Source: Lytechinus pictus
Taxonomy: Eukaryota
NCBI RefSeq assembly: GCF_037042905.1
Contig: NC_087245.1
Coordinates: forward strand, 4,092,001 to 4,156,000
DNA: 64,000 bases
Direction: 5' to 3'
Shown: piece after piece, positions 3,470-56,349 of the stretch
Position numbering within the stretch: the first letter of the stretch is position 1
Layout: each line of letters starts with the position of its first letter
Program-made: the position numbers and the translations under genes
The notes under the pieces: generated by a model
What the model was told of the DNA's origin: nothing
Databases searched by the model: none
The model's input: the letters and a program-made list of their open reading frames with translations, nothing else

Positions 3470-4309
3470 ATGGCAAGACGAGGAGAAGAGGAAAATATTG
3501 AAATGGGGGTCATTGGAAACACATCTACTTCTGATGAAGGATTGGGCTGCTGTGGAATCATTCTTGCAATTGTGTCGATAATACTCGTGATTTGCACGCT
3601 ACCCCTTTCACTTTTTGTCTGCATAGTAGTGGTTCAGGAGTATGAGAGAGCAGTTATCTTTAGACTTGGACGTCTCTTGTCTGGTGGTGCTAAAGGTCCA
3701 GGTCTCTTCTTCATCCTACCTTGCATCGATGATTACAAAAAGGTAGATCTTCGCACCATTTCATTTGATATTCCTCCTCAAGAGATTCTGACCAGGGATA
3801 GTTTGACCATCTCTGTGGATGCTGTGGTCTTCTACCGTGTCAAGAATGCTACCATCAGCATCGCCAATGTGGAAAACGCAGACAAGTCCACCAGACTTCT
3901 GGCTCAGACGACACTTCGTAATGTCCTGGGCACCAAGAACCTAGCTGAGATTCTTGCAGAACGTGAAGGCATCAGTCACTACATGCAGTCCACCCTCGAC
4001 AATGACACCGACCCTTGGGGTATCTTAGTAGAGCGAGTTGAGATCAAAGATGTTCGTTTACCAGTCCAGCTCCAGAGAGCCATGGCTGCTGAAGCTGAAG
4101 CTTCCAGAGAGGCTAGGGCTAAGGTGATTGCTGCTGAAGGAGAACAGAATGCTGCTCGTGCTTTGAAGGAAGCTGCAGATACTATGGCTGAATCTCCATC
4201 GGCTCTTCAACTGAGGTACCTACAGACCCTTAACACCATCTCAGCCGAGAAGAACTCCACTATCATCTTTCCACTACCCATCGATCTCCTCAAAGGTATC
4301 CTAAAGTAA
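3470..4309 (+). CDS. Stomatin/band-7 (SPFH) family protein, paralog 1, single-exon CDS, 279 aa
   Basis: Cys motif (GCCG) and a hydrophobic hairpin with the conserved Pro (TLPLS), followed by VVQEYERAVIFRLGR, GPGLFFILPC, RLLAQTTLRNVLG and LQRAMAAEAEASREARAKVIAAEGE...LQLRYLQTL...IIFPLPID. Collinear with human stomatin and C. elegans MEC-2 as recalled. Confidence 0.96.
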   Translation: MARRGEEENIEMGVIGNTSTSDEGLGCCGIILAIVSIILVICTLPLSLFVCIVVVQEYERAVIFRLGRLLSGGAKGPGLFFILPCIDDYKKVDLRTISFDIPPQEILTRDSLTISVDAVVFYRVKNATISIANVENADKSTRLLAQTTLRNVLGTKNLAEILAEREGISHYMQSTLDNDTDPWGILVERVEIKDVRLPVQLQRAMAAEAEASREARAKVIAAEGEQNAARALKEAADTMAESPSALQLRYLQTLNTISAEKNSTIIFPLPIDLLKGILK

Positions 4310-5422
4310 ATATTAACCCAAACTGTTTCATAATCGGAGAAAATTAGGGATGTCGACAGTTGATGCTATTTGATTAATTTCGATACGGTTTTCGTAGAGT
4401 CAATACTTGTAGGTAGTTGTCCCATCCATCAATTAAGGATCTGTATATGACCAGCTTTGCTTGTGATTCAACTCCCAGCTACCGGTGTGATTGACAAGGT
4501 CAATGCAGATACAATGTGGCCCTCAAGTATTAGTCATCCCTTTGACGCTGACAAAATAAATTATTTAAAAATCTTGAAATAAAATATTCCACTAGAATTT
4601 GATATTTCAATATCTCATTAATAAGACTTTTGGAAGTGGTTGGTTGCCTTCATTCTTTATTGAATTAAAATACGCTTGTCATGCAAGATTTCTTATCTGT
4701 TCATCTGTACGTATACAAGTATGATTACCAATATTGTAGTTTACGCAATCCACTTTTCTGCCATCGTTAGAACGAAAATTCGATGATGATAATGTTGTTT
4801 AACAAGTTTATTGAAATTGTGATTACAGTTTACATTAATTATTCCTATAATTTTATTTATATCTATACATGTTGTGATAATCAAACTATTTTGTTTGTAT
4901 GAAGTGAATACTGAAGCCTTTTTCCAATTTCTGCTTACATTAAATGTTATTCTCGTATATAGGTGACCTGTTTGTTTTTTGTTTGACTGTCTTAATTTAT
5001 TCACGGTTTTATAAAAAACAATATACACAGACACAAGCCGTATAAAGGTGGTTTTCGACGAGGACGTGCAAGGAAAATTGATAATGATACAGACATTTTG
5101 ACCACTTTTTTGTTTGTTACTGAAGCATGAATGAATGTGTAGGCCATTCCACATGAACTCACTGAAGAGTGAATATATCATAAATATCATAAGGAAAAAG
5201 GAACCAATATATTGGTACATGTCTCTCATTTTGAAATAAAGGTGGATTAAGAAATCATCTGTCTGGATAATGACCATCAGATTAGTAAAGAGAAGATTGT
5301 CGTTTTGATAACTTATCTGGTTTAATATTTGACACCATATTGTACTTAAAATGATCCTAAAGTAACGGAAGTAAGGCGCTACAGTAAGCAGGGTGCTTTC
5401 ACATCCTATAATCTTTCATGTA

Positions 5423-5745
5423 AGCGCTGTGGTTTAGCGGTTCTGACTCCACCTTGTAATCAGAGGGTCGTGTATTCAAATCCCACCATGGACTAGCGAC
5501 CTTAGGCAAGGCGTCGATCCACACTTTGCAACTCTCACACATTAGGTATCGGTATAGGAAACAACAGTCACTCTCAACCCAGGTGCTAATTGGGTACCTG
5601 CAGGAAACAACTGTCATTGTGGTTGGTTCAGCAAGTGTGCGCCTATAACAGGCACTAAAGGAGCTATGAATCCAGTGACCGGATAATAGCTTTTAGTAGT
5701 CGTAGATTGATATCGCGCTATATAAAATCAAATTATTATTATATT
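5423..5745 (+). mobile_element. tRNA-derived SINE
   Basis: Box A-like tggtttagcgg, box B-like attcaaatccc, core ctcaacccaggtg...tgggtacc, and tail gcgctatataaa...(att)n. Confidence 0.8.
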
Positions 5746-6064
5746 AGAATGAGGCACAAAAGGGAAGAAAGAAGAAGAATATAAAGATAAAAGTTATGTG
5801 ACTTTATGTTACAGTTACCCCTGTTATTTGATTGAGAAAAAATATACCTCTTTCAGGTCATCTTTCCAACATATCAAAATATCATTATTCCACACCCCTT
5901 GCTTACCAAACATGACATTTTGCTAATCCCTATTTTATCTTTATCTTTGTATCTATACTATAAAGAACTAAAACGAGAAACCCTCAGCTATGCACACACA
6001 TTATTGGTATACTGGGTAGGAGCTTTATAGCAAAAAAAATTGGCATAAGCTACATGTACTAAAT

Positions 6065-6194
6065 NNNNNNNNNNNNNNNNNNNNNNNNNNNNNNNNNNNN
6101 NNNNNNNNNNNNNNNNNNNNNNNNNNNNNNNNNNNNNNNNNNNNNNNNNNNNNNNNNNNNNNNNNNNNNNNNNNNNNNNNNNNNNNNNNNNNNN
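6065..6194. other. Assembly gap
   Basis: Run of N. Confidence 0.99.
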
Positions 6195-8339
6195 ACAAAC
6201 ATTTTTTGTGCAAATTTAATTTCATTTATGATTAGTGATTGCGCGTTTGGCAGATTAGAATGTACAGTATATATGCTGTTTTATACTTGGAATATGAAAA
6301 CATACGAAATAATAATTATCAAAACAAAATATCATACCGTACTCATTTGTGTGTCATTGAACTAGTTGTCACCGTTATTTCATAGAGCTATTACTGTAAT
6401 AGCTCTATGGTTATTTATACACGTATGATGATAATCAAATGTGATTGCAGAATAAATTAAAAGAAGGGAGAAAGGGAGAAAGAGAGAATAGACGACAGAC
6501 ATGACAGAGAAGGAATGATCGAGGGACAGGATCTGTTAGCAACCGATCGAAAGGGAGAGAATCTGAGGGAGGCGTATCTGTGCATGTGGGTGCGAGCATG
6601 CGTGTGTATGTGGGGTGTGTTTGTGTTATACAGAGAGAGAGGTGATTGATTGATTGATTAAATCATACATTAGGTACATGATTAAATCAAGGTATCTTGA
6701 TAGAATTCACATTAATGCACCGTTTTAGCACAAAAGGAAAATTAATTTAAAATGCTGTGAGAGAGGGAGGCAAGCGAGCCAAAAATAACCTTTTGATACA
6801 TAATTCAATTTGTTGTGACGGATTTTGATATGTTTAAAACATATATGATATAAAAATCAGTTGCAAAAACTTGATTTATGTATTGAAAAAGCTATTTTGG
6901 CTCGCTCGCTTCCCTCGCTCATAGCATTTTAAAATCAATTTAGCCCTTTATGTCATGTCTTGCCCCTAAAACTTTAGACTCATTACGCCACTGACCTCCG
7001 CCCAAACTAAAAAAAAATAATAATCCCTCATAAGAGAACAAAACAGCCCCAACCATGAATGCCGATCGACACCCATGGCTGGCCAGTGTATATGCTACTA
7101 ATATAACGGTGGTTTACTTTGAATTCTATCAAGATAATTATGAAATATGGTGCTTTCAACATTTTGTAGATAGCGCTCTTTAATGTTGATGAACGAAAAG
7201 CAAATCAGAGAGCCGACCTCAATTGTGATGTTTGGGGTGCGATTGTGCAAAAACAAAATCACAGAGCGGAAAGTGTGTTGCGATTTGCTTTTCACGTTTT
7301 AAAAAACAGCACCACAGAGTTGAATTCCGTTTTTCCTTTTTCATGAATGAAAAAAAAACCCGACTTATCCATCCGTACCATGATTGGTTTAACATAAAGG
7401 GAAAGGGAGACAGGTACAGACAGAAAATCAGGAAGTATTCCACTTTAGGTACGAAATGTGCTACTGTAATTTTACATCTCACCCCGCATCTCACATTCTT
7501 TATAGTGTAGATGATCGGTGCAAAAATAGCAAGAATTTTTCAGATTATGGCACAAGCATGAAATTTGGCTGACAGGTAGAGTAAATTGTGCTGAACATTT
7601 TTAGCTGGGAGTGTCAACTTGATCTCTCCTCGTATAGCAACAGTTACTAGGTAACTTATTTACATTAGCAACCGCCAAATTTGGGGTGTTATCTCAATTT
7701 TAAAACTATATTTTGACTTCTAAGCGCCAATTTCACAATCACATATCAAGCAACATTCCAAACTTGTATAGCAACAGTTGCTTAGCAACCTATTTTCCAT
7801 ATAAACTATAGATGATATTCCTGAATACAACATCTGGACATGATATTTTTATGAGAATGGTTATAACATCGGTCAAAGTATGAAACTTGGAATTTAAAAA
7901 AATATATATCTCTTATATAAAAAGAACGTACATTTAATGTGTAGCACATGCCTTCTAAAATTTTGGCATATATTTTGTCAACAAATCAAGCGTGCAATTA
8001 TGCTCGACAAAGAATATTAGAGGCATCAGAGGAATACATCAAGAAAGTTACAGTCATCATCCTCTTCGATGGGAAGATGAATTTTTCATCAATCGAAGTG
8101 TAAGAAATATTTCTCCCCATAAGGACATTGTATTGCGAGACAAAGTGATAGTGCCATCAGCAGAATCATTTCCATCTGATTTGGACATGCCAAGAAGTAT
8201 TGGAGGCATATGGAAGGAAGAAGTATATCAGAACTTAATGATACTGTTCTGTGGCAGAGTATGGATCACGTCCAGCCAACATGGCCAACCTGATATTACA
8301 AGTGCTTCACCTGTATGTGACAAAGTCAGCTGCGCATAG

Positions 8340-8790
8340 TCCTGCAAGATCTTTAAAGTCATGATAGATCTTGAAGCTGCAAGATCCCATTCGAAACACC
8401 TGCAATCGGAACTGACAGGTCAAATCAACTTCTGCAAGAGCTCAAGTCATGATAGATCACGGATCTGCAGGATCCACGCCAACACGCCTGAAACAGAACT
8501 GACCGGTTCAAATAAACTCTTGCGAGATCTTTTACGTCATGATATATCCTAGAGCTGCAGGATTGATCCAGGTCAAAACACCTGGAATCGGAACTAACAG
8601 GTCCAAATTAACTTCTGCAGAAGTCACGATAGATCATGTAGCTGCAGGATCCAGGCAAACACACCTGGAAATTGAACTCAATGATCCAAATCAACTCTAA
8701 CAGATCTTTCACTTCATGATAGATCCCGGAGCTGCGCAGATGCAAGTCAAAACACCTGGAGACGGAACTGACAAGTCAAAATCATCTCCT
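8340..8790. repeat. Degenerate minisatellite, about 88-90-bp unit, about 5 copies
   Basis: tcatgatagatc...agctgcaggatc...aaacacctggaa...ggaactgacagg recurs near 8359, 8447, 8537, 8623 and 8713. Confidence 0.85.
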
Positions 8791-9737
8791 GTTCATAGCA
8801 TTAGGTCCCGGAACAGCATGGAGAACTTAATGATCTTCATTGCAGGCTACGGAAGGGAGGGGTAAAACCAACGCCTTTCAAGCGACCGACTACTACGTTA
8901 GCAAGGGATAAAATGGTATCCATGCAAGCACTCATTTGGAAATTACATTCTGGCGAAATTTTGATGTTTGAAATGATTTTAAACTAAGTTGACCGAATCA
9001 ATTCTTGGCGGTCATTCTTTCACCTGTCCAAGATCAGAGATGTTTAGGTTGTAAGATCCCATGACCTCCTGGTGAGCTCTTGTAATCGTTCTTTCTACAA
9101 TAGTGACCTCTGGCTAAAAGTTTATTTTGTAGAATTCTTTCCAAGGGCATTGTAAAGGTAAACAGGGTCTCAAAATAGTTTAATCGGGCCCCATTGGAAA
9201 ATAGATAGCCACAAATTTCCAGAATGTCAACGGTTCTAGACTTCTAATTCACGATGATACAAGTGTCAATCAATTTCACCCCTATTGTCAATCACTCAGA
9301 TAAGTAATCATGAGGTCTATTATCATTCAATGATAAGTACGTAACTATACAGTAATAACAAACATTAACAAATAACCCTTTACTATCATGACTATGAAAG
9401 ACACCAAATAATTTAATCAATGGATGATCTTGTACATAATTATGTTTAGGTTAATCCCCAATATATATGGTTTCCAAATGGAGAAAGATTGGTTTTAAGG
9501 TGAGTTTTCTAACATGCAACAAGTATCACTATGCCAATGATAATGGAACCCATAGACATCGTTTTCGGAAATATAAACCATATCATGAGGTAGTTAGATT
9601 TGTGCAAGATTTTACGTTTTTAAGCATCTACAAGTATTAGAAGCTCACATTAATCATCTTACCATACGGCCTTTCACAATCAGTTGCAGAAAACATGTTA
9701 CTTAGCAACCGGTCTTTATCATTGGCGGGTATACACG

Positions 9738-11843
9738 CATGGACCTGGAAAGCGGGGGTGCTGAAGCACCCCCAAGATTTTCCCAGGGGGTGCTGCGTGT
9801 ATTATTTTCCATATGCAGCACCCCCTGGAATTCTAGTTGTTGTGCCACATAAGAGAAATGTATGGAAAATGACCAAAATCTCGTATTGAAACCCCTTTTT
9901 TGGCTTATCAAATTTCTTGGCACCAAAACGACCTTCATTTTGTAGTGAAACCTTTTTGCTCGTCAAATAGGCATGGGCGAATCCAGGGAGCCTAAGGGAG
10001 TCCCTATTGGCGGAGCAAAAAAAAAAAAGGGGGGGGGGCATTTCAAAAAGAAAAAGAAGGGAAAAGAGAGGAGAAAATAAGAGGACGAAGAAGAGTGAAT
10101 AAAATAAGGTGAGGGACGACTTGGAAAATAAAACAAAAAACCTTTCATGTCACTATATAAAGTTTTCGCTCGTGCTTCGCATTCGCATTGCATGTTTGAT
10201 GAGGTAGGCCTACATGAGATTCTTCCTCATTAGGTTGATATGGAGCTTAAAATATCAAGTTGATGGCAATATACAAAACAAATTTTAGCTCCGACATCGA
10301 GCTTTCATTATTTTGTTTGAGTAATGAAATGATTTTCAAAAAAGGCTCTGTAAAATGTCCGTATTATTGTCTCAGTATCAACATTTTCAGCTCGAGCTGC
10401 GCGCTCGCGTTATTTTTTTGTCAGGTATTCTCAGTCTTCGTGTATTCCACAAAGTTATCAAAATATCCCTTTTCAGGTTTGATTGTCAAAACCTATCCGC
10501 CAGCGCTGTGCGCTAACATTTTGATTGTGACTAATGTATACCTTAATAATTTCCTCTATAATAATAAGCAATTCTATAAAAAAAACTATTTAAAATCCCC
10601 TTTCCATAACATCACGATTTGCGCTCTTATTAATTTGTTGAAATATATACATCAAACCATGCATCCTATTCATAATTACAAAAGTGCTTAAAATGTCCAG
10701 TTTTCAGGAAGTAATATCAACAAATTTCGAGCTGTCATTAGGCTTATTAGATAAATAAATACAAACATAACATTTTCATGAAGTCCTAATAATTAAATTG
10801 TCCTTTTTTAGAATAGAATATCTCACACTAAGGAAGAGGAATAGAAGAAAGTCATCATTTTCATATGATGCCGAAATGTCCTAAGAATGTCCAGGTCCTA
10901 GATCAAAATAAAAATAATAAAAATATCAGCTTGCGCTTCGCGCTCACATCATTTTTAAGAGCGATCCATAATATCCACTTCACAATTTTCCTACATAGTG
11001 CTTGAATTAGTGCTTAAATTGACCCTTTTTCAGATAGGAATATCAAATAATTTCAGTTCGCGCTTCGCGATCACATTATTGATTTTCATGATAAAAAATA
11101 CATTTAGAATGCCCAGATACTAGCTATAAATATTAAACACACGCACGCATGTTTATTGAGATACACAGTTTGTTTTTTATTCAAAACATTCTTAAATTAT
11201 CCAGTTTCAGACTACAATTTTCTGCTCGCGCTTCGCGCTCACATTATTGATTTAGGATACCTAATTACCTATTCTTTTCATGATTTACAAAACATGAATA
11301 GAGTAACCCGTTTTTAGGTCTAAATCTTTTTTTTTCCGCTCACGCTCGCATTATTTAGTTATATGCCTATAACAATGCCCATAATTATAAAATATGCTTA
11401 GAATTTCCATTTTTAGTTTGGAATGTCAAAAAATTTCAGCTCGCGCTTCTCGCTCGCTTTATTTGTTTATTGAATGTGTATCGCTTTAGAGCTAACTACA
11501 AGTTAACAGTCCTCAACACCCTTTTCGATCAGTTATATACGCATTTTGTTCAGGATCACAAACATTGCCCACAATGTTCGATTTTCAGGACAAGATTAGA
11601 TAGCGCTTCGCGCTCGCACTATTTAAATATGGCTTATGAGAGGATTACTATGTTTTATAAGAATAAAGCAAAGAAGTGACTCTTACGAAGAAACAAACAG
11701 ATATCTTCTCTGAGTGGCCGATCGGGGAAAATATGGGTGAAAATATTTTTTCGCCCCCCCCCCTTATTCGCGAAAGCTGGATCCGCCCCTGAATTTAGGC
11801 CTACTTCAGCACCCCCAGCCAAAAAATCGTTCCCAGGTCCCTG
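9738..11843. mobile_element. Composite non-autonomous hAT-like element containing a second element (about 9972-11791)
   Basis: Termini catggacctggaa...gggggtgctg / cagcaccccc...ttcccaggtccctg, with 8-bp TSD tatacacg/tatacatg. The inner element is bounded by catgggcgaatccag / ctggatccgcccctg. Confidence 0.75.
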
Positions 11844-12812
11844 TATACATGGTAATCCAGGGGCAGATCTAGGATTTTCCAGGGGGGCACATTTTTCCGA
11901 GGAAAAATTTGACAAGCAAAAAAAACAAAACGCTCTTTAAATCTGTATATACAACCCTATTTACTATAATTGTTAACCTTGCAGTAGTTGTTTAACAGTT
12001 TAAACAAACATGATTTTAAAACTTGGTTGTGTTTAAGATTTTAAACAATGGTGCAAAACTAAGAGTTGTATCCCAAAAATAATCAAGAAAGGACTTCTCC
12101 ATCTTTTGACGAGAGGACGTACCTGCGTGCTTGGTCTCCCTCGTCATCCCTTTTTAGGGGTAACGATATGGCATTTGTTGGGAATAACATCCATCTTATA
12201 ACCAGCTATATTTCATACTGAATAATTATATTTTATATATTAGTCTTTGATTAGCATCCGTCCTCTTTGGAATAAAATGCTCATGAACTTTACTCATTGT
12301 GTGACAGACTATTGATTTATTCTCATTTTGTAACACTAAACAATCACCACGCTACATATACATGTATATCTCAAGTGTTACACTGTTCAAACAACTTCAT
12401 AAGGTAAACAGCGTTGTATAAAAATCTTTTTTTTTGTGCGTGTACGAGTCGAGGGAGAAGAGGTACATTTAGGGGGCAGTGTGGCTCTGTGTGTGCTACG
12501 TTGGTAAATTGCCAATTCGTCCACTGCCCACTCGTCTACTCACCACATGGTCTACTTTCATTTAGTCTAATGCCATTCCATCTATCAACATTTCGTCAAA
12601 CAAGCATTTGATCCAATCATCACTTCGTCTAATTACCAGTTCGTTTATGACCATTTCGTCTCATAACCAGTCGGTCTAATATCCATTTCATTATCATTCA
12701 TTTTGCACAATTTACCACTTAGTCCAATTAGACCAAATGGTATATGGACTAAATGGCTATTAAACCTATACTGGTTATTAGACGGAATGGTATTAGACTG
12801 GATGAAAGTAGA

Positions 12813-14471
12813 CTTTCACACTGCATTTCCTTGACCCAATACTATCCTTAGCCCCAGTGGCGTAACTACGGGGGGGGGGGCATGGGGGGGGGGCACGTGC
12901 CCCCCCCCCCCCAATCGGCTGGCCAAAAAAAAAAAAAAAACGGGGAAAAGGAGAAAAGAGGGAGAAAGGAAGAGAAACGTAGTGGGGAAAGAAGAAATTA
13001 TAATGTTACATTATATTATGTTATGTTATATTACATAAGAAGCATTTTTTTCATAAATTTATGAAACATTATTTGCTCAGGGCATATGTCTTCATTGTAC
13101 TTGGTGCTCGCATAGTCTGTTTAACGAGATATATGATCCTGTTGTACTAAAACCTCCCGTTTTCAAATCAATATACACCAAATATATTTCCTCGCAATTC
13201 GAGTTATTATTGTTTTATGTAGTGACATTTACTTCTTTTTCTTGACTACTTTAAGTGATTGCCCAATTTTAAGGTCTTAATATAAAACATTTCCTGTCCG
13301 TGCTAACGTTCGCATTAGTTGATTGGTGAGATGTCTGCTCTTCATGAATTCTTAAAATCAGTCCTTATAATGTCAATTTTTCTGATCTGAATATCAAAAT
13401 TTTTCAGCTCGCGCTTCGCGCTCGCATCATTTGGTTAGTGAAATACGTACGGTCTTAGTGAATTCCTACAAACAAGCATTAGAATGCCCCTCTTCAGGTC
13501 TGAATTTCATAATATTTCAGCTCACGCTTCGCGCTCGCAGTATTTGATTAGTGAGATGCGTATGATAACCATGATTACAATGACTACAAAAAGTGCTTCA
13601 TGTGTTTAGATGTAATTCTAACAAAATCAGCAAAGGATGGCACTAGCATTAGATGACTATGCTGAGAGACTTATACTCTTAAAGGATACCTAAAATATAT
13701 AGTCCTTAAAATGTACCTGTTTGGGGTCAATATATACAAAAGTTTCAGCTCGCGCCTCGCGCTCGCATTGTTTGTTTAGCGAGACAGGTACGTATCACGA
13801 TTACAAAAAAATTGCTTATAATGTCCCTTTTAGTTCTGAATTATCAAAAAAAAATTAGCTCGCGCTTCGCGCTCGCATTATTTGGTAAGTGAGATACTTA
13901 TCCGTTAAATGACATTGCATGTCCTTAAAATGTCTCTATTAGATCAGTATACCTGGCAACTGAGCGCGCTTCGCGCGCTCCCTAAGTTACTTGAATTTTT
14001 TGCTGGTGCCCCCCCCCAATGCCGTGACCCACGGTACGCCACTGCTTAGCCCCATACAATACTATCTTTTGGGGGGTTTCACACTGTCTTCTTAACCCAT
14101 ACTATTTGCTAAACCCGGGTTAATTCCTTAACCCGCACAGCTAGCACAGCTCATGAATATTGATGATTTTGCCACACAGAGCGTGATTAACGTGCATTTT
14201 GACTTCTGTGATTGGCTGATGCTTAGCCCCACTTTTCCTGAGCCGGGTTTTGTTTCATACTGCACCTCTTAGCACCGCAATTCTGGTGCTAGCACCGCAA
14301 TTAGCCGGCTAACCCTGCTTTTTTGCAGGGCCAGATAGCACCGTACTATTTACCGTGCTAGCCCACTTTGCTTATACGTAGTGTGAAACCTAAATGAGCT
14401 AAGCTTTAACCCCGGGAAATTGGTGGGGCTAAGGGGGTGCGGGTTAAGGAAAGTATGTGCAGTGTGAAAAG
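12813..14471. mobile_element. Middle nested MITE with ctttcacactgca / tgcagtgtgaaaag ends
   Basis: Inverted termini and internal ttagccc/ttaaccc repeats. It is split by the insertion at 12855-14044. Confidence 0.6.
12855..14044. mobile_element. hAT-like non-autonomous element with a perfect 8-bp TSD
   Basis: TIR cagtggcgta / tacgccactg. TSD cttagccc at 12847-12854 and 14045-14052. Confidence 0.9.
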
Positions 14472-14552
14472 CATATAAGTGGTGAGTGGACGAACTGATG
14501 GTAGACTAAATGATAGTATAAACGATTTGGCAATTGGAAGAATTGAAAATAT

Positions 14553-38734: not shown

Positions 38735-40221
38735 CGTCACAGTCTCCTGGTTGGTTAAAAATGGAGGCACCAGCCTTTCTGCTATCTACAGGGAGAGGAA
38801 ATGTGTAGGCCTAATTAATGCACGACACGAGACGTAGCTATAGGTTATCTACTCTCTGAGTTAAATACACCTTGGACTTCATACGATAAACTGGTGATAA
38901 CAAACAGTTTAACTAGTATAATACACACCAAATGCCAACCATTTGAATTCCTTGTGCATTTGCGTCAACTTAATATTTATTCTGCTGAAATCCGCAGAGA
39001 GAGAGAGAGAGAAATGTGTGCCTGTAGTCGTGCTGGATACATACACGTGACTGAGAGTTCCGTCACGAGTGAATCCTGTTCGAGAGGAAAGATTAAGAAC
39101 ATTTGAATAAATTATGGCATGTTGCCAATAGTAACCCACACTGTTAAACGATTGTCGTGCGATCAACACCGAGGTCGAGGTCATGTACCATAGCCACCTC
39201 GCGTCAAGGGTATAATTGTCTGTGGGTTGGGGGGGGGGGGGGGCCGCGGGGACGGACAGCCCCATTCATCATGAGCGGTGCAAGTTTGCACCTGTCCATT
39301 GGGAGGGTGGTCAACTAGCCCTTGATTTGTATCTAACATAACAGTAAATACAATAAAAAAAATATATATTTGTTACCCCCTCCGCTATCAAAATACCGCG
39401 AAGCCGCTCCTGAATAGACCGACCTGTACTACTTACATTATCTTTAATTCAGTCTTTTAACCCACCAGCATTTTACAATTATGATTATCTGGAAGGCACA
39501 TATTGCAAAACACTATGGCATATGTTGATGGGATAATCCAATTTGAAAAAGATGGAAATTATGTTAGCGAAACTGAGGAGAAAGTAAGAATTTATAAAAC
39601 AAAACGAAACAAAACAGAATATTTATATGGTTTAAAAAATTAAGGAAGTACACTTTATTTTCATTGTACAAAACCAGGAACGATTCAAAATCTACCTTGA
39701 TACTCGATTTCGACACTTTATTATTTGAAAAAATATGACAAATAGTTTACTTTAAAACAAATTTTTTGTTCACATTCATCATGAGTAGCATAAATATAAA
39801 TTTCCCTATCATCAATCAAATCATCAATAAAAAAACACAGATTGAAAAAATTACAGACTTTTCCCCAATTTCTACACACGTAAGCCAACTATTTCGTTCA
39901 GCTGGAATTAACAAAAAACAGCATAATACATCTTTTAAAAAAATTAATTAACAACTTCATGAGATGATTACAAAAAATATATTAATCTCCGAATTCTATT
40001 ACAAATGGTTTTGTTGAAAATGACTTAATGAAAGACGTCATAACATTTATACTTATAATATCATTTTTCGAATAAAGTAAGCTTGTTATGTTAATGAATG
40101 GGGTTAATTGAGTTGATCAGCGATCAGTTCAATAGTGGGCACCTGTCATATCATTATATTTATGTCTTCAGAATTCAAATGTAAATTAAATAAACATTAT
40201 TTGTATCTTTGCTTTAGGCAA

Positions 40222-40455
40222 ACCAGTAGCCTGTAACACAAAGCATAGCAATTAATCATATTGATTTTCACAATTGATTGTACGTATATGCAATCAATTA
40301 TTGTAGGAAAAATGTACTACGATTGAGACCATGTTCCTGTAACACAAAGGTTAGCGATTAATTTTACGCTTGATTTTCACGATTGATTGTACATTGTAGT
40401 CAATGGAATCAATCGTAGAAAAACCATTGCTAAGCTTTGTGTTACCGGGCCCCTG
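40222..40455. mobile_element. Short MITE with an internally duplicated left end
   Basis: cctgtaacacaaag occurs twice (about 40230 and 40336) and is inverted as ctttgtgttaccgg at about 40435. Confidence 0.55.
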
Positions 40456-40984
40456 GAGTGTCATAATTATAGGAATCATTATTACATGTAATGTCTGTTC
40501 CCAATGGCGTACATATAGGGACTCGGTAATGGGGGAGGGGCTCCCCCTAAAAAAATCCGTCCTAAAATCATATTTTCATTTTAAAAAAGTAAATATTGCT
40601 CTCTCACTTCACTTGTACGCGACTATTTAGACAATTTATTTCCGTACGACATCTCTTTGCCCCCTCATCAATTCTTTTTGCTCATTACGCCTATATTAAC
40701 TAAGTTGTTGTATTTACAATAGTGAATAGAAATGGCTACCGTCTCCATGGGCAGTACATTGTCGATCAATGCTAATTAAGTAGGCCTAATGGATAAATAC
40801 TGTCGAGATGTAAGTCTATATGCAAATATGCCAGTAAATATCATTATAAATGAACTTTAGATACCGTTGTTTTTCTTTCAGCAATAGATTGCGAATTCTC
40901 AAGAAAGAAGACTAAAAATAGCGCGTATAATGATGAGAGTAAAAAAGCATGTCTAATTTAGTCATCCATTATTTTCTCCTTTTG

Positions 40985-42476
40985 ATTTGTCAGGTACCTA
41001 TTACGTTTGTGTATTCCATAAAGTTCGAAAAATATCCCTATTCGGGTCTGATTGCCAAAACGTAACAGCTAGAACTGCACGTGCATTTTGATTGGTGAGT
41101 TATGTATATTTCATTATTAATTCTATAAGAAACTACTTAAAATCCGCATTTCATGACAGTTTATCAAAAATTTCGGCTCGCGATTTGCGCTAGCATTAAT
41201 TGTTAAAAATATATTAACTCTTGCATCCTATTCATAACTACAAAAGTACTTGAAATGTTAAGTTTTCAGGCCATATTAACATATTTCGTGCTCTCAATGG
41301 GCTTGTTAGATTAATAAATAAATAAATAATATTTTAATTTCATAATTAAATTTTCCTTTTTTCAGAATGGAATATCGACAAGTTTCATCTCGCGTTTAGA
41401 AAAAGGGAAATGAAGATAGTCATCATTTTCATGTGATGACGAAATGTCCTAAGAATATCCCGATCCTATATGTCAAAACTCAAGTAATAATAATGAAAAG
41501 TATAAGCTATTTATTAAGAGCGATCCATATCCACCTCATAATTTTCCTACAAAGCGCTTGAAATATAGAGCTTAAATTGACACTTTTTCAGATCGGAATA
41601 TGAAATAATTTAAACTCGCGCTTCGTGCTCGCATTATTGATTTTCATGATAAAAAATGTATTTAGAGTGCCCAGATTCTATAGGTCTAAATCTGAAACAC
41701 GCACACCCATGTCTATTGAGATACGCAGCTTGTTCTCTATTTAAATGGTTATCCAGTTTCAGATCAGAATATCAAAAATGTTCTGCTCGCGCTTTGCGCC
41801 CGCATTATTAATGTAGGAAGATCCCCAATTACTCATCCTTTTCATGATTTACAAAACATGAAAAAGTGTCCCGTTTTTAGGTCCAAGTCTCGAATTTTTC
41901 GGCTCGCGCTTCGCGTTCGCATGCATCTGATTGTTTAGTTATATATCTATCCTGTTCACGATTACAAAAAGTGCTTAGAATTTCCAGTCTTTAGGTAGAA
42001 CTGTCACAAACTTTCAGCTCGCGCTTCGCGCTCGCATTATTTGATTGTTGAAATATGTAACGTCTTCATGGCTAACTGCAAGCAATCCTTAACAGGTCCC
42101 TTTTCGATCATGAGATCAAAACGTATATTAAAAATTTCTGCTCGCGCTTCGCGCTCGCATTTATTATTTAGTTGCATACAATGTTCAAATTTTAGGACAA
42201 GTGAGGTGTGAATATTACACCACTCTCGTTTCTGATTGTTGAGTTATATACCTATCCTGTTCACGATTACAATAGTGCTTAGAATTTCCAATCTTTAGGT
42301 AGAACTTTAAAAAATGTCAGAATAAAGCTAAAAAGTGACTATTAGGACTACCCCTTCAAAGAGACAAACAAAAATCAACTTCGAGCGGCCGATCGGCCGA
42401 TCGGGGAAAATTTGGCCGAAAAAAAATTCCGCCCCCCCCCCCCCCCCCCCATTGGCGAAGGCTGGATCCGCCCCTG
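40985..42476. mobile_element. Truncated copy of the GCGAAGC-motif element (homologous to about 10415-11791)
   Basis: Collinear with the 10.4-11.8 kb copy and ends in gctggatccgcccctg. Confidence 0.8.
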
Positions 42477-43010
42477 CTGGATATTACCATGTAGACTATA
42501 TTCCAATTATTATTGAGTTTCATGTAATACTGTCAATTTAAAGGAATCCTCGCTAATACGTTCCCATGAAATAAAAGTCTATTAATTTGAATTATTGCAA
42601 TCAAGCGAATTAGAAGTTAGCTGAAGAAATTAATCAACGAGCCTGAAATTCTAGACTAGCAGTGTGTTTTAAAACCAAGGACAATGCATACAAATCATAG
42701 CCGACTCTTTAGAAAGATACCCTACTCTTGCTATACACACGCACAAATTGTGAATAGGTTTTCACTCATATTTAATGAAGTAAGCTCTCTCTATAGTTAG
42801 CTTGCGCTAGCGCTACGATACGTACGTCGCCTTTACGGAGCTAGGAGCTTGCTAGCCTTGATCTATCGTGAATAGTGACAGAAATTTATCCATCATCACT
42901 TTGTAATCTGATATTCTACGGCTTTTTCTTATTTTCCCATATGCGTCGCTTGGTTGTTGTGGTAGAAGCAGTGTACATTCTACACAATACGAGTATCATC
43001 ATACGATCAT

Positions 43011-43919
43011 ATGAGCAACAATCGTGTGAATCCTGACAATTCGAGTCAAATTGAACTGATGGCGCAGAAACAGAGAAGCAACGATGGGCAGTGGCAAGCC
43101 CAACATGATGAACAAGGCATTATTGGAGCAAATACCGCAGACCATAGCATTGGTTGCTGCGGGGTGTTCCTCATGCTTATTTCGGTGTTACTAGTGATCT
43201 GCACGCTCCCATTTTCATTATTTATCTGCATAAAGGTGGTTCAGGAGTATGAAAGAGCAGTTATCTTTAGACTTGGGCGTCTCTTGTCTGGTGGTGCTAA
43301 AGGACCGGGTCTCTTCTTCATCCTACCTTGCATCGAGGATTACAGAAAGGTAGATCTTCGTACCATTTCGTTTGATATTCCTCCTCAAGAGATTCTGACC
43401 AGGGATAGCTTAACCATCTCTGTGGATGCTGTGGTCTTCTACCGTGTCAAGAATGCCACCGTCAGCATCGCCAATGTTGAAGACGCAGGCAGATCAACCA
43501 GACTTCTGGCTCAGACGACACTTCGTAATGTCCTCGGCACCAAGAATCTGTCGGAGGTCCTGGCAGAACGTGAAGGTATCAGTCACTACATGCAGTCCAC
43601 CCTCGACCATGACACCGACCCTTGGGGTATCCAAGTAGAGCGAGTTGAGATCAAGGATGTTCGTTTACCTGTCCAGCTCCAGAGAGCCATGGCTGCTGAA
43701 GCTGAAGCTTCCAGAGAGGCTAGGGCTAAGGTGATTGCTGCTGAAGGAGAGCAGAATGCTGCTCGTGCTTTGAAGGAAGCTGCAGATACTATTGCCGAAT
43801 CTCCATCGGCTCTTCAGCTGAGGTACCTCCAGACCCTCAACACCATTGCAGCAGAAAAGAATTCCACTATTATCTTTCCACTTCCTATTGATCTTATCAA
43901 TGGTGTTATGAAAAAGTAA
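43011..43919 (+). CDS. Stomatin/band-7 family protein, paralog 5, single-exon CDS, 302 aa with a longer N-terminus
   Basis: Intact ORF with SPFH motifs, divergently oriented to paralog 4. A second in-frame Met (MAQKQ) could be the true start. Confidence 0.95.
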   Translation: MSNNRVNPDNSSQIELMAQKQRSNDGQWQAQHDEQGIIGANTADHSIGCCGVFLMLISVLLVICTLPFSLFICIKVVQEYERAVIFRLGRLLSGGAKGPGLFFILPCIEDYRKVDLRTISFDIPPQEILTRDSLTISVDAVVFYRVKNATVSIANVEDAGRSTRLLAQTTLRNVLGTKNLSEVLAEREGISHYMQSTLDHDTDPWGIQVERVEIKDVRLPVQLQRAMAAEAEASREARAKVIAAEGEQNAARALKEAADTIAESPSALQLRYLQTLNTIAAEKNSTIIFPLPIDLINGVMKK

Positions 43920-50738: not shown

Positions 50739-50983
50739 CTTGTCCTGTTGACATGGATTTGGTTCTAAACTCGTGTTACTCATGGCATCATTCTCCTCTT
50801 AGTGCAGTAGAGGCAGAGGGATACTGCCCTAAACAGACAGGACCAAGAACCCTAGCAATGTTTGCCTCCCAGCAAGAAGTCAGTCAGGTGTATACCTACT
50901 TTTACAATAAGTCTGGAATCCAAGCTGGACAGACGATCGAAGTGGCCATTTGGGTTGCCAATGCGTCTATAGGAATGCCGTCT
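50739..50983 (+). CDS. Exon A of the lectin-mucin-PAN gene: N-terminal part of a C-type lectin-like domain
   Basis: Acceptor ttttgttcacAG ends at 50738 and donor GTAAGT starts at 50984 (phase 0). Translation CPVDMDLVLNSCY...EAEGYC...LAMFASQQE...IWVA fits the CTLD pattern CP-x-SCY / EA-xx-C / LA-x-S-xx-E / WIG. Confidence 0.8.
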
Positions 50984-51585
50984 GTAAGTATGACACCCCC
51001 CTCGCCACCCGATTTCCCCTTTGCTTTCATAAGACTTCAAAATTCTTATTCCGGGGGGGGGGGGGCACTGGCATTAAAAAGTGGATACCATGCTCGTACC
51101 CGAAAGCAACTATAAATGGTTGATTTTCATGCATGGTCGGACAATGTCTAAGCACATGGATAAAAGAGTATCAAACTTACCGAATTAAACAAAAAATGTA
51201 TGCATTAAAAACATGAAAATGCAAGTTTAGGTTACTCTGAGATCAAATCATGATAGGTTAATAGCTTATGAAATTACTTTTGAAATTCTAATAAGGAACA
51301 TGGTGCCCACTTTGTAATGAATTGCATTGGAAAAAAAGGAACGAGCGAGCAACGCGAGCGAGTCCTAAGATAAATCTGAATTTCATGATTCTGTAAGATT
51401 TATGCAAACCGATAAAAATCAATCAGAATATGATGAAAAGTAAGATGTTGAAACGTAAAATACATAGATGTACAAATGACAACTTAGTGAAGTAAATGGG
51501 GGGGGGGGGGGGATACCACCACAAAGTAAAGGGCCTACGCCGATGTATTGAAAACCACCTGCTATTTTTCTTTCGTTTTATCCAG

Positions 51586-51679
51586 CTTGGTCTTGGTTGT
51601 ACCATCTTTGCCACAGGAGGCGTTCTGTCGGATGAGCCATGTAACATACCACACGGTGTCCTTTGTGAAATAGAACTCG
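51586..51679 (+). CDS. Exon B of the lectin-mucin-PAN gene: C-terminal part of the CTLD
   Basis: Polypyrimidine acceptor tttttctttcgttttatccAG (phase 0) and donor G|GTGAG at 51680 (phase 1). Translation LGLGCTIFATGGVLSDEPCNIPHGVLCEIEL fits the CTLD ending C...D-x-x-C...(I/L)CE. Confidence 0.82.
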
Positions 51680-52026
51680 GTGAGATTTGCTTACATTGTT
51701 CGTAGATTAAACTTGCTTCTTCCTTTTCTTCATTTTATGTGAATGCAGACAGAAGTAAGAAAGTATGAATAACTGCTGAACGGGATTAAGTGACAGACAG
51801 GCCGATCGATGAATTTTAGCTAGCGAGCAAAATCGATTCGCCAGGGATAAGTAGGTTAAAAAAAAAATTAAAATGCATTCTTCATTTCTTTGAAAAAAGT
51901 CATGTGACAAAATGACACATCTTTGTGATTTCTTTAAAATAACTAGTATCGCATGGGGCAACAGATCAGATACTTGCACAATGAGCTAATAATATTCATA
52001 TCAATTTCAATATCAATCCTAATGCA

Positions 52027-55000
52027 GATTCACCTTCAACAGAGCTCGCTACAACTGATCGAACGACTGATTCACCTTCAACAGAGCTCGCTACAACTGA
52101 TCTAACGACAGATTCACCTTCGACAGAGCTCGCTACAACTGATCAAACGACAGACTCACCTTCAACAGAGCTCGCTACAACTGATCTAACGACTGATTCA
52201 CCTTCGACAGAGCTCGATACAACTGATTTAACGACAGATTCACCTTCAACAGAGTTCGCTACTACTGATCTAACGACTGATTCACCTTCGACAGAGCTCG
52301 ATACAACTGATTTAACGACAGATTCACCTTCAACAGAGTTCGCTACTACTGATCTAACGACAGATTCACCTTCAACAGAGCTTGCTACAACCGATCTAAC
52401 GACAGACTCACCTTCAGCAGAGCTCGCTACAGTTACTGATTTAACGACAGACTCACCTTCAACAGAGCTCTCTTCAACTGATCTAACGACATATTTACCT
52501 TCAACAGAGCTCGCTACAACTGATCTAACGACAGATTCACCTTCAACAGAGCTCGCTAAAACTGATCTAATGACAGATTCACCTTCAACAGGTCTCGATA
52601 CAACTGATCAAACTACAGATTCACCTTCAACAGAGCTCGCTACAACTGATTTAACGACAGATTCACCTTCAACAGAGTTCGCTACAACTGATCAAACGAC
52701 AGACTCACCTTCAACAGAGCTCGATACAACTGATCAAACTACAGATTCACCTTCAACAGAGCTCGCTACAACTGATTTAACGACAGATTCACCTTCAACA
52801 GAGTTCGCTACAACTGATCAAACGACAGACTCACCTTCAACAGAGCTCGCTACAACTGATCTAACGACAGATTCACCTTCAACAGAGCTTGCTACAACTG
52901 ATCTTATGACAGATTCACCTTCGACAGAACTCGGTACAACTGATCTAACGACTGATTCACCTTCGACAGAGCTTGATACAACTGATTTAACGACAGATTC
53001 ACCTTCAACAGAGCTTGCTACAACTGATCTTATGACAGATTCACCTTCGACAGAGCTCGCTACAACTGATCTAACGACTGATTCACCTTCGACAGAGCTC
53101 GATACAACTGATTTAACGACAGATTCACCTTCAACAGAGTTCGCTACAACTGATCAAACGACAGACTCACCTTCAACAGAGCTCGCTACAACTGATCTAA
53201 CGACAGATTCACCTTCAACAGAGCTTGCTACAACTGATCTTATGACAGATTCACCTTCAACAGAGTTCGTTACAACTGATCTAACGACAGATTCACCTTC
53301 AACAGAGTTCGTTACAACTGATCAAACGACAGATTTACCTTCAACAGAGCTCGCTACAACTGATCAAACGACAGACTCACCTTCAACAGAGCTCGCTACA
53401 ACTGATCTAACGACAGATTCACCTTCAACAGAGCTTGCTACAACTGATCTTATGACAGATTCACCTTCGACAGAACTCGGTACAACTGATCTAACGACTG
53501 ATTCACCTTCAACAGAACTCGGTACAACTGATCTAACGACTGATTCACCTTCAACAGAGCTCGCTACAACTGATCTTATGACAGATTCACCTTCGACAGA
53601 ACTCGGTACAACTGATCTAACGACTGATTCACCTTCAACAGAACTCGGTACAACTGATCAAACGACAGACTCACCTTCAACAGAGCTCGCTACAACTGAT
53701 CTAACGACTGATTCACCTTCAACAGAGCTTGCTACAACTGATCTTATGACAGATTCACCTTCGACAGAACTCGGTACAACTGATCTAACGACTGATTCAC
53801 CTTCAACAGAACTCGGTACAACTGATCTAACGACTGATTCACCTTCGACAGAGCTTGATACAACTGATTTAACGACAGATTCACCTTCAACAGAGTTCGC
53901 TACTACTGATCAAACGACAGACTCACCTTCAACAGAGCTCGCTACAACTGATCTAACGACAGATTCACCTTCAACAGAGCTTGCTACAACTGATCTTATG
54001 ACAGATTCACCTTCAACAGAGTTCGTTACAACTGATCTAACGACAGATTCACCTTCAACAGAGTTCGTTACAACTGATCAAACGACAGATTTACCTTCAA
54101 CAGAGCTCGCTACAACTGATCTAACGACAGATTCACCTTCAACAGAGCTCGCTACAACTGATCAAACGACAGACTCACCTTCAACAGAGCTCGCTACAAC
54201 TGATCTAACGACTGATTCACCTTCAACAGAGCTTGCTACAACTGATCTTATGACAGATTCACCTTCAACAGTGTTCGCTACAACTGATCTAACGACAGAT
54301 TCACCTTCGACAGAGCTCGTTACAACTGATTTAACGACAGATTCACCTTCAACAGAGTTCGCTACAACTGATCTAACGACTGATTCACCTTCAACAGAGC
54401 TTGCTACAACTGATCTTATGACAGATTCACCTTCGACAGAACTCGGTACAACTGATCTAACGACTGATTCACCTTCAACAGAACTCGGTACAACTGATCT
54501 AACGACTGATTCACCTTCGACAGAGCTTGATACAACTGATTTAACGACAGATTCACCTTCAACAGAGTTCGCTACTACTGATCAAACGACAGACTCACCT
54601 TCAACAGAGCTCGCTACAACTGATCTAACGACAGATTCACCTTCAACAGAGCTTGCTACAACTGATCTTATGACAGATTCACCTTCAACAGAGTTCGTTA
54701 CAACTGATCTAACGACAGATTCACCTTCAACAGAGTTCGTTACAACTGATCAAACGACAGATTTACCTTCAACAGAGCTCGCTACAACTGATCTAACGAC
54801 AGATTCACCTTCAACAGAGCTCGCTACAACTGATCAAACGACAGATTCACCTTCGACAGAGCCCTCTACAACCGATCTAACGACTGATTCACCTTCAACA
54901 GAGCTCGCTTCACCTGGCCTAATGACAGATTCACCTTCAACAGAGCTCGCTACAACTTATCTATTGACAGATTCACCTTCAACAGAGCTCACTACAACTG

Positions 55001-55845
55001 ATCTAACGACAGATTCACCTTCGACAGTGCTCGCTACAACCGATCTAACGACACAATCACCTTCAACAGTGCTCGCTACATCTGATCTAATGACACAATC
55101 ACCTTCAACAGAGCTTGCTACAATTACTGATCTAACGACACATTCACCTTCATCAGAGCTCGCTACAACTGATCTAACGACTGATTTACTTTCAGCAGAG
55201 CTCGCTACAACTGATCTAACGACAGATTCACCTTCAACAGTGTTCGCTACAACTGATCTAACGACAGATTCACCTTCGACAGAGCTCGTTACAACTGATT
55301 TAACGACAGATTCACCTTCAACAGAGTTCGCTACAACTGATCTAACGACTGATTCACCTTCAACAGAGCTCGCTTCACCTGGCCTAATGACAGATTCACC
55401 TTCAACAGAGCTCGCTACAACTTATCTATTGACAGATTCACCTTCAACAGAGCTCGCTACAACTGACCTAATGACAGATTCACCTTCAACAGAGCTCGCT
55501 ACAACTGATCTAATGACAGATTCACCTTCAACAGAGCTCGCTACAACTGATCTAATGACAGATTCACCTTCAACAGAGCTCGCTACAACTGACCTAATGA
55601 CAGATTCACCTTCAACAGAGCTCGCTACAACTGATCGAACGACTGATTCACCTTCAACAGAGCTCGCTACAACTGATCTAACGACAGATTCACCTTCGAC
55701 AGAGCTCGTTACAACTTATCAAACGACTGATTCACCTTCAACAGGGTTCGATACAACTGATCAAACGACATTTTTAAATTCAACAGAGCCTGCTACAACT
55801 GATCTAACGACAGATTTACCTTCAACAGAGCTCGATATAACTGAT
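52027..55845 (+). repeat. Coding minisatellite, 42-bp unit (DSPSTELATTDLTT), about 90 copies
   Basis: Unit gattcaccttcaacagagctcgctacaactgatctaacgaca. The frame is preserved throughout; the only indels noticed are 3-bp insertions. Confidence 0.98.
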
Positions 55846-56349
55846 GTGCAATCGTCTGCAGAAAGCACTTCATCTACTCCAGATGTTTCAACATCCCTTA
55901 CAACTATCAATTTTCCAACAACCTATGGAACGACTGCTCTAACGTCAGAATCATCTGCAACTGAATTACGCACTTCACATACACAAAACCTAGGGACGAC
56001 TAAAGTCACATCACCGACTGAAATCACAGCAGTTGGTCCGGTCACAACTATGACAACAGAAAACAACACCCAAAGCGGCATGGTCCCTACTTTCAAATCA
56101 ATAGCTCATGAAACAGGAAAGTCATTTGTGTTACTTCATGTTAATTATTCTGTTTCATCAGTCGATGTACTTTCTACTCATGAAATGATTCAGACACGAA
56201 TCCGATGTGCATCAAAGTGCAGTGGATTATCCGAGTGTTATGCTTTCACCTACTCCCACATAACTCAAGAATGTTTGGTCGGAAGAAACGTTAGTTATCA
56301 GAGCCTGCATGGAACCAGTGGTATTACGTATAGAAAAATAGACCTGTAG
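52028..56349 (+). CDS. Terminal exon: acidic Thr/Ser-rich mucin-like repeat plus C-terminal PAN/apple-like domain
   Basis: Acceptor aatgcAG ends at 52027, and G+AT rebuilds the first Asp of DSPST. The exon is in frame with track ORF 52570..56349. The C-terminus CASKCSGLSECYAFTYSHITQECLVG has the PAN-like C-x3-C-x5-C-x-AF-x-Y...C spacing. Confidence 0.88.

Follow-up and report, generated by a model that had tools for sequence, protein, structure and literature searches.

A stretch of 64,000 nucleotides from the sea urchin Lytechinus pictus (G000:C1:4092001-4156000 on contig C1, here called the window) carries an array of five stomatin genes at positions 3470-43919. According to the window's list of open reading frames (ORFs), these are five intact, intron-free genes of 279-302 amino acids that together occupy about 40 kb on strands + - - - +. 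Judged by patterns of substitution within and between sea urchin genera, the protein-coding cores are shown to be kept alike by interlocus gene conversion among direct and inverted copies, a process that the N-terminal heads, the first hairpin arms and the flanks escape. We think it very likely that a single explanation covers the array, in which a retrocopied founder, conversion of the core, and a set of scaffolds sharing one body and differing in their loops are combined. The genes, named S1 to S5, and their segments are located as follows in the window.

S1, 3470-4309, + strand: single ORF of 279 amino acids; Pfam Band_7 match with an E value of 1.2e-37. Head 3470-3544, hairpin arm 1 3545-3586, hairpin arm 2 3587-3628, homogenised core 3629-4309.
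S2, 21163-22017, - strand: single ORF of 284 amino acids. Head 21931-22017, hairpin arm 1 21889-21930, homogenised core 21163-21846.
S3, 27490-28341, - strand: single ORF of 283 amino acids; the most divergent paralog. Head 28258-28341, hairpin arm 1 28216-28257, homogenised core 27490-28173.
S4, 37877-38734, - strand: single ORF of 285 amino acids counted from the first ATG; head to head with S5. Head 38645-38734, hairpin arm 1 38603-38644, homogenised core 37877-38560.
S5, 43011-43919, + strand: single ORF of 302 amino acids with a long head. Head 43011-43151, hairpin arm 1 43152-43193, homogenised core 43236-43919.

The ORF of S4 reaches 38770 if a GTG extension is accepted under the bacterial start rule; the ATG start is used here instead. 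Two assembly gaps (6065-6194 and 25585-26379) lie within the span, both of them intergenic and in contact with no ORF, and the copy number of five refers to the genes outside these two runs of N.

All five proteins match the Band_7 profile (PF01145) over positions 1-175 of 176, with E values from 9e-39 to 1.2e-37, and residues 23-282 of S2 align end to end with human stomatin (E 3e-124). The hairpin proline is invariant within the pattern VICT-x-P-[FL]-SLF and aligns to the human hairpin, the membrane topology being predicted. A cysteine precedes the hairpin in every copy (GCCG in S1, S4 and S5, GFCG in S2, NCCA in S3) and is by sequence a putative palmitoylation site. A second cysteine (LPC; human C87) is kept in four of the five; S3 has LPF there, and further carries DVC in place of DVR. 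From VVQEYE to the C terminus, 229 residues are nearly invariant across the array, with nonsynonymous divergence (dN) of 0.014-0.050. A first-pass annotation of the window, made from its letters alone, had claimed five intact single-ORF stomatins within 40 kb in this strand pattern, a hairpin proline and juxtamembrane cysteine in all of them, and a nearly invariant SPFH/coiled-coil/C-terminal part; the ORFs, domain matches and alignment agree with each of these statements. The same annotation called the heads largely unalignable. They are indeed strongly divergent, and range from 25 to 47 amino acids, yet they can be aligned on a common skeleton, M-A-x-x-G ... (V/I)-I-G ... S-x-(D/E)-(E/G)-x-G-C-C-G, and every head is recognisably conserved in its ortholog from Strongylocentrotus purpuratus. 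At the DNA level the copies are 88-92.5% alike from the hairpin to the stop codon of the coding sequence (CDS), and their flanks are unalignable.

The array is not peculiar to L. pictus. In S. purpuratus (AAGJ06000007.1, 3.78-3.84 Mb) the order is S5(-) S4(+) S3(+) S2(+) S1a(-) S1b(-), all single ORFs, which is the window's order and strands reversed with one additional copy of S1. Synonymous divergence (dS) between the heads of S1a and S1b is 0.31, marking them as a recent duplicate. The orthologs lie in two extracted loci, as listed here.

S5 ortholog of S. purpuratus: L003 3482-4414.
S4 ortholog: L003 10067-10927.
S3 ortholog: L003 17713-18561.
S2 ortholog: L004 18066-18914.
S1a and S1b: both within L004.

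Lytechinus variegatus has the head-to-head pair S4(-)/S5(+), with S4 at L001 2410-3267 and an S5 ortholog (P0005) that is 98% identical to S5, and the S4-S5 neighbourhood is colinear between the two species at 78-91%. In L. variegatus, S. purpuratus and Diadema the annotated CDS spans amount to three times the number of amino acids plus three, and so contain no coding intron. Because S. purpuratus has matching genes in matching order and on matching strands, the five-gene array is older than the split between Lytechinus and Strongylocentrotus. The first-pass annotation had suggested a possible lineage-specific system; restriction to this species is contradicted by the gene-for-gene sharing with S. 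purpuratus and by the intronless stomatins of Diadema. It had also allowed that such clusters might be ancestral and already described; the array is ancestral in this clade, and a search of the literature on stomatin and sea urchins found no earlier description of it.

The evidence for conversion begins with the contrast between paralogs and orthologs. In the core, paralogs differ by a dS of 0.21-0.40 within the window genome and of 0.13-0.30 within S. purpuratus, and dS between cross-genus orthologs is 0.38-0.57, practically the range (0.38-0.61) found for all cross-genus pairs whether orthologous or not. In the head and hairpin, dS among the window copies is about 1 or more. Paralogs that are older than the speciation and yet closer to each other than to their orthologs must therefore have exchanged sequence. 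Trees repeat the pattern. In the nucleotide tree of the core, all Lytechinus copies stand apart from all S. purpuratus copies (support 90/92; 100% of bootstrap trees), and approximately unbiased (AU) tests reject all five orthogroups, with p from 6e-10 to 3e-3. The tree of the head plus hairpin recovers six of six orthogroups, requiring no more than the minimal number of changes, and there the AU tests reject the genus clades (p 5e-5 and 5e-41).

A core tree split by genus, with within-genus core dS of only 0.13-0.40, could also arise with no conversion at all, if the array had grown in each genus separately, in recent times and from one or two ancestral genes, by birth and death; the S1a/S1b pair is a genuinely recent duplicate of this sort. 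However, independent expansions would not yield five matching heads in matching order twice. The two genera agree in gene order and strand, their heads and first hairpin arms match up one by one to the exclusion of genus clades, and the paralogs differ too deeply in their heads, and have flanks too dissimilar to align, for copies made recently. We consider independent expansion extremely improbable.

A sliding window along the alignment places the switch between the two histories in the second hairpin arm. On its 3′ side, the distance between orthologs equals that between cross-genus non-orthologs in every window, and the orthology signal has thus been erased. At nine core sites all five window copies have one base and all six S. 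purpuratus copies another, the inverted S1 and S5 included. Eight of these nine fall at third codon positions, and the Lytechinus state is also present in the two L. variegatus copies that were checked. Two more core sites are nearly fixed in this way, with zero fixed sites in the head or hairpin, where 20 of the 27 ortholog-private states are located. Since the last upstream ortholog-private site is at nucleotide 240 of the alignment and the first nearly fixed site is at nucleotide 261, the 5′ boundary of the converted tract falls at S2 residues 53-60. At the other end, the core of S5 retains some ortholog-specific sites in its final ~110 nucleotides.

A built-in control is provided by an unlinked, intronless stomatin gene of the same genome, here called U (C16:8492787-8493614). 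It has dS>1 to every array copy of its own genome and a dS of 0.62 to its own orthologs. Conversion might in principle be mimicked by a lineage-specific codon preference, or by selection on synonymous sites, driving the cores to converge within each genus; GC content at third codon positions (GC3) in the core does differ between genera (0.47-0.48 versus 0.52-0.57), and most of the genus-fixed sites are silent. Yet U encodes nearly the same core protein and has diverged from the array in the same genome, which therefore excludes codon-usage convergence as the source of the likeness. Moreover, GC3 of U is 0.66, equal in both genera, the two U copies agree with each other at six of the nine genus-fixed sites instead of tracking the genus state of the array, and the orthology signal in the core is erased, not merely damped. 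An explanation from codon usage is very improbable in our judgement. By the same substitution data, U takes no part in conversion, and the constancy of the array core is not the work of purifying selection alone but of active homogenisation by gene conversion.

As to timing, a run test of the Sawyer type, applied in 25 tests, is significant for S2-S3 only (p<0.0005), a pair of neighbours with concordant variable sites. Orthologs of L. pictus and L. variegatus have a dS of 0.13-0.19 and are closer than any paralog pair. Because only one pair is significant in the run test, most of the exchange seems to be old, falling between the genus split and the split of L. pictus from L. variegatus.

A trivial source of multiple copies is faulty assembly, in the form of haplotigs or of scaffolds mis-joined or duplicated around the gaps. 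Two N gaps do lie within the span, and in L. variegatus the S4/S5 pair is doubled, perhaps as a haplotig. Against this, the window copies differ by 8-12% in the core and have quite different heads and unrelated flanks, they correspond, in order and strand, to five separate genes of S. purpuratus, and transcript contigs hold copy-specific heads and untranslated regions (UTRs). The order and orientation S1, gap, S2, gap, S3 also agree with S. purpuratus. We give an artefact next to no chance. The prospect raised in the first-pass annotation that the copies might collapse is likewise contradicted, by their unique flanks, their divergence and synteny in three species. The second gap sits in one minisatellite with units of ~55 bp, rich in tcaatcaa, which is alike on either side (25405-25584 and 26380-26440), and unresolved copies of this repeat are probably what the gap contains.

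Some further observations concern the structure of the array in the other species. On L. variegatus CM031015.1 the S4/S5 pair occurs twice, at 91.23 and 92.02 Mb (L001 and L002), as nearly identical copies 0.79 Mb apart; their S5 proteins are identical and their S4 proteins differ at one residue at least, and the doubling reflects either a segmental duplication of recent date or a haplotig left uncollapsed in that assembly. The interval between S3 and S2 is ~19.5 kb in S. purpuratus versus ~5.5 kb, gap included, in the window. Just downstream of the S. purpuratus S3 gene, at L003 19667-20338, there is an ORF fragment resembling reverse transcriptase.

The origin of the intronless genes was addressed with a six-frame search that covered the whole 812-Mb assembly. 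It found six intronless stomatin loci, the five array genes on C1 and U on C16, and two multi-exon loci on C15, in agreement with the expectation of the first-pass annotation that an intron-containing parent exists in the genome. The loci outside the array and U are these.

Gene A, C15 14305099-14315920: multi-exon stomatin, more divergent and on a long branch of the tree.
Gene B, C15 ~0.873-0.945 Mb: multi-exon stomatin.
Distant SPFH gene, C18 22667770-22668039: 29% identity.

At least six coding exons of gene B were detected over ~72 kb, with one short exon not found; its junctions include one between CIK and VVQEYE and one between GPG and G. Compared with the multi-isoform stomatin P0025 of Diadema antillarum, gene B is 65-98.6% identical per matched exon, and 96.7-98.6% identical in two of the five. 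The stomatin gene of Saccoglossus is similarly extended, spanning 92 kb.

The protein tree unites all intronless echinoid genes in a single clade (support 92/86, or 90/81 when gene A is omitted), and the sister of this clade is the clade of gene B, with moderate support (92/86 and 85/84). Within the intronless clade, camarodont U and the array are grouped at 98/94, and a topology that joins the array to gene B and excludes U is rejected (p 0.02). Both Diadema setosum and D. antillarum have a tandem pair of intronless stomatins of 318/319 and 305 amino acids (L026 10001-10957 and 18767-19684; L024/L025), and these intronless genes imply that the intronless state predates the split between Diadema and camarodonts. 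The D. setosum pair adjoins an Ank/MORN/zf-MYND gene that is also the neighbour of U in S. purpuratus. The Diadema gene in the position of U groups with its tandem neighbour and not with camarodont U (AU p 0.008), which hints at conversion in that pair too, or at a separate duplication.

On these relationships the founder of the array was probably an old retrocopy of a gene-B-type mRNA. An mRNA of gene B with a long head of the form MSNNRV...ELMA would have been retrocopied in the echinoid stem, leaving an intronless gene at the U locus beside the Ank/MORN/zf-MYND gene. A copy of the gene at this locus would later have founded the array on C1, which would have come to hold five genes before the split of Lytechinus and Strongylocentrotus, and four of the array genes would have come to start at an internal methionine of the old head. 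The idea of a retroposed or intron-stripped founder with local expansion, already present in the first-pass annotation, is upheld to the extent that the intronless clade is sister to gene B with moderate support and that its copies multiplied locally.

Introns can be lost by other routes, either one by one or through recombination of a cDNA at the original locus, in which case there need have been no retrocopy. The single intronless clade is only moderately supported, poly(A) and target-site-duplication marks do not enter into the case for a retrocopy, and a conversion boundary a few codons from the old junction between CIK and VVQEYE is a hint of cDNA-like templates. All of the parental coding introns, numbering at least six, are nevertheless absent together from six genes and from the Diadema copies, no intronless gene shares a contig with either multi-exon gene, and the multi-exon parent is intact. 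The combination of absent introns, a separate contig and an intact parent is the usual signature of a processed copy, and we regard loss by another route as distinctly unlikely next to retrocopying.

The heads carry a record of this descent. The long head of S5, MSNNRV-P...ELMA, is common to U and to proteins of Diadema, Apostichopus and Ptychodera, and the start of S1-S4 corresponds to an internal methionine of this S5/U-type head. Between window genes and their S. purpuratus orthologs, the ratio of nonsynonymous to synonymous change (omega) in the head is 0.10-0.18 for S1, S4 and S5, and 0.72-0.84 for S2 and S3, where it is based on few sites. Pooled between genera, omega is 0.28 in the head, 0.15 in the hairpin and 0.06 in the core, and that of the U core is 0.01. 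By these ratios the heads are not junk, and U looks like the most constrained copy. We considered the possibility that the five heads derive from different alternative first exons of the parent, and rejected it: the heads are mutually alignable, S1-S4 begin at the internal methionine, and the isoform junction seen in other species lies further upstream than the boundary between variable and constant parts in the urchin array.

The 5′ limit of the converted tract (window 38560-38602 in S4, and equivalents in the other copies) lies within a few codons of the parental junction between CIK and VVQEYE (K57 and V58). This closeness may simply reflect the onset of strong nucleotide conservation.

Transcription was assessed over 37400-43399 with stranded raw reads (X19, X20) and transcript-like contigs (X1, X15) from the same species. 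Depth is low (1-12), and ~6% of each run was read. Two transcribed spans are evident.

S4 transcript, 37400-39070, - strand: 3′ UTR, CDS and at least 336 nucleotides of 5′ UTR, colinear with the genome; its 3′ end lies past 37400.
S5 transcript, 42711-43399, + strand: ~300 nucleotides of 5′ UTR and the start of the CDS; the compared stretch ends at 43399.

Pieces of X1 and X15 contigs extend over most of the S4 span, including the head and UTRs specific to S4, and leave only short breaks; the head and 5′ UTR are unbroken over 38513-39070 and run into the core. First mates map to the + strand only, which means that the RNA comes from the - strand. For S5, an X15 contig extends over 42711-43337, and from about 42800 first mates map to the - strand only, at a depth of 3-12, indicating + strand RNA. 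No splice joints are listed in S4 or S5 over 37400-43399; UTR introns could lie further upstream. Reads on the S4 core (37943-38141) have the S2-type letter at all five differing sites, one of them unique to S2, and represent either cross-mapped S2 mRNA or an allele of S4 that has undergone conversion by S2. In the S3 stretch 26900-28900, 50-63% of words are present in eight runs, four from each of the studies behind X1 and X15. These data indicate that S4 and S5 are transcribed and, indirectly, that S2 and S3 are as well, contrary to the eventuality, mentioned in the first-pass annotation, that only one copy is expressed.

The unique intergenic DNA between S4 and S5 has no RNA cover. Read spikes at 39229-39251 and 42429-42450 were rejected as transcripts and attributed to poly-G/poly-C read artefacts. 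At 40200-40600 and 42000-42200, also between S4 and S5, contig depth in RNA-like runs reaches thousands, which suggests dispersed repeats or transposon fragments.

Structures of human stomatin (PDB 9oh9, 9wkz) show a 16-mer membrane cage (PMC12344292, PMC13724742). The human hairpin (residues 29-53) is bent at P47 (PMC13724742); the N-terminal loop (residues 1-28), flexible and for the most part disordered, sits outside the cup, packed against the SPFH1/SPFH2 interface of the subunit it belongs to and of the adjacent one (PMC13724742; PMC12407830). In our alignment (A1) the human ring residues E59-R70, R205-E262, P245 and P270/P272 all map to invariant columns, their equivalents in S1 (human number minus 2) being E57, R68, R203, E260, P243, P268 and P270. 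Every residue that makes ring contacts in the human cage thus has its counterpart in the homogenised part, and the variable part of the urchin proteins corresponds to the N-terminal loop and the first hairpin arm.

By analogy with these cages, conversion between about the hairpin end (S2 residues 53-60) and a point close to the stop codon would renew the cage body within each lineage. The most likely outcome would be five stomatin scaffolds that share a cage body, differ in their outer loops and could mix within one cage where they are co-expressed. A mechanosensory role, as suggested in the first-pass annotation, would be conjectural. A stronger proposal is that selection maintains a system of constant body and variable head, in which conversion would be tolerated or favoured for keeping the ring surfaces interchangeable, so that mixed 16-mer cages present combinatorial sets of rim loops. 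We hold this as possible but unlikely. If it were true, the array would be a gene-array counterpart of the diversity that the parent obtains from alternative first exons, and the conversion boundary near the exon junction would be the boundary of a functional module.

Several points weigh against the combined explanation of retrocopy origin, core conversion and shared-body scaffolds. The synteny comparison covers the array of S. purpuratus except for ~15 kb between S3 and S2, and that of L. variegatus at S4 and S5. Support for monophyly of the intronless genes is moderate, and an independent origin of those in Diadema is not rejected (p 0.16). The case for a retrocopy rests on the absence of introns, the persisting parent and the tree, and not on poly(A) or target-site-duplication marks, although decay of such marks is to be expected in a retrocopy older than the Diadema/camarodont split. 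Discrete tracts were not found by the run test in pairs other than S2-S3, all of which have p>=0.026 with none surviving correction for 25 tests. Nor is there the rise in GC3 that would mark GC-biased conversion, the array cores having 0.47-0.57 versus 0.66 in U. The evidence of expression covers S2-S5. Finally, a complex prediction for full-length S4 plus S5 scored 0.00, which is evidence neither way and leaves co-assembly without support from this test.

Downstream of the array, at 50739-56349 of the window, lies a gene of another kind. Its ORF (52570-56349, + strand) encodes 1259 amino acids with Thr/Ser/Asp-rich repeats of ~14 residues of the type TTDLTTDSPSTELA, and ends in a C-terminal PAN/apple domain (Pfam PAN_1, E 9e-6). 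L. variegatus has a 1273-amino-acid gene in the equivalent position downstream of S5 (L001 15501-20909+).

Structures of stomatin cages are recent, and the array offers a natural panel for asking what their flexible N-terminal loop does, with the cage body fixed and the loop and first hairpin arm varied five times, and the Lytechinus literature offers embryonic cell lines and larval immune models. For studies of concerted evolution, it is an example limited to one part of the coding sequence in which orthology can be established from synteny and heads, an unlinked gene (U) serves as control, and inverted copies participate. There is also a practical lesson, as trees built from the SPFH core would wrongly present these genes as lineage-specific expansions.

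The urchin proteins, known from sequence alone, resemble human STOM in the hairpin proline, the palmitoylatable cysteine (human C30), the salt-bridge residues of the ring and the prolines of the C-terminal beta-strand. In vertebrates, STOM and its relatives are single genes with several exons, whereas the urchin genes are five coding-intron-free neighbours with cores kept alike by conversion. Closer in design are the multi-exon, multi-isoform stomatins exemplified by gene B and its counterparts in Diadema, Ptychodera and Haliotis, which also have one core and several heads. In Diadema antillarum (X2/X4), Ptychodera flava (X1/X2) and Haliotis rufescens (X4/X5/X7/X10), the isoforms of one gene have an identical core from just before GCCG and differ in the head only. 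The head-only variation among these isoforms implies that a constant core with a variable head, obtained via alternative first exons, is an old property of stomatin genes, and the head of S5 and U is homologous to one of the isoform heads. However, in the multi-isoform genes the first exons are spliced to shared exons, whereas each urchin head is fused to its own core, whose sameness is renewed by conversion, and the variable part in the urchin extends through the first hairpin arm. A variable-first-exon cluster of the protocadherin or UGT1 type can be ruled out for the array, as a single ORF runs through each head and the core that follows it.

Partial concerted evolution and retrogene arrays are both known kinds of genome organisation, and the present array is a clean, well-controlled case rather than an unprecedented one. 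In TLR1/TLR6 (PMC2077338) and KRTAP1 (bioRxiv 10.1101/282418), paralogs are likewise closer within a lineage over part of the gene, and the rest of the gene and the flanks escape. The urchin array differs from both in protein family and in that the homogenised part corresponds to the oligomerisation body of a ring scaffold, with inverted copies included. The ELOA3 retrogene array of primates (PMC10664989) is similar in being an intronless derivative of a multi-exon parent that was amplified in tandem. It consists of near-identical whole repeats, whereas the stomatin array is old, being shared by more than one genus, and its genes are alike in the coding core only, each with its own head and its own regulatory DNA.

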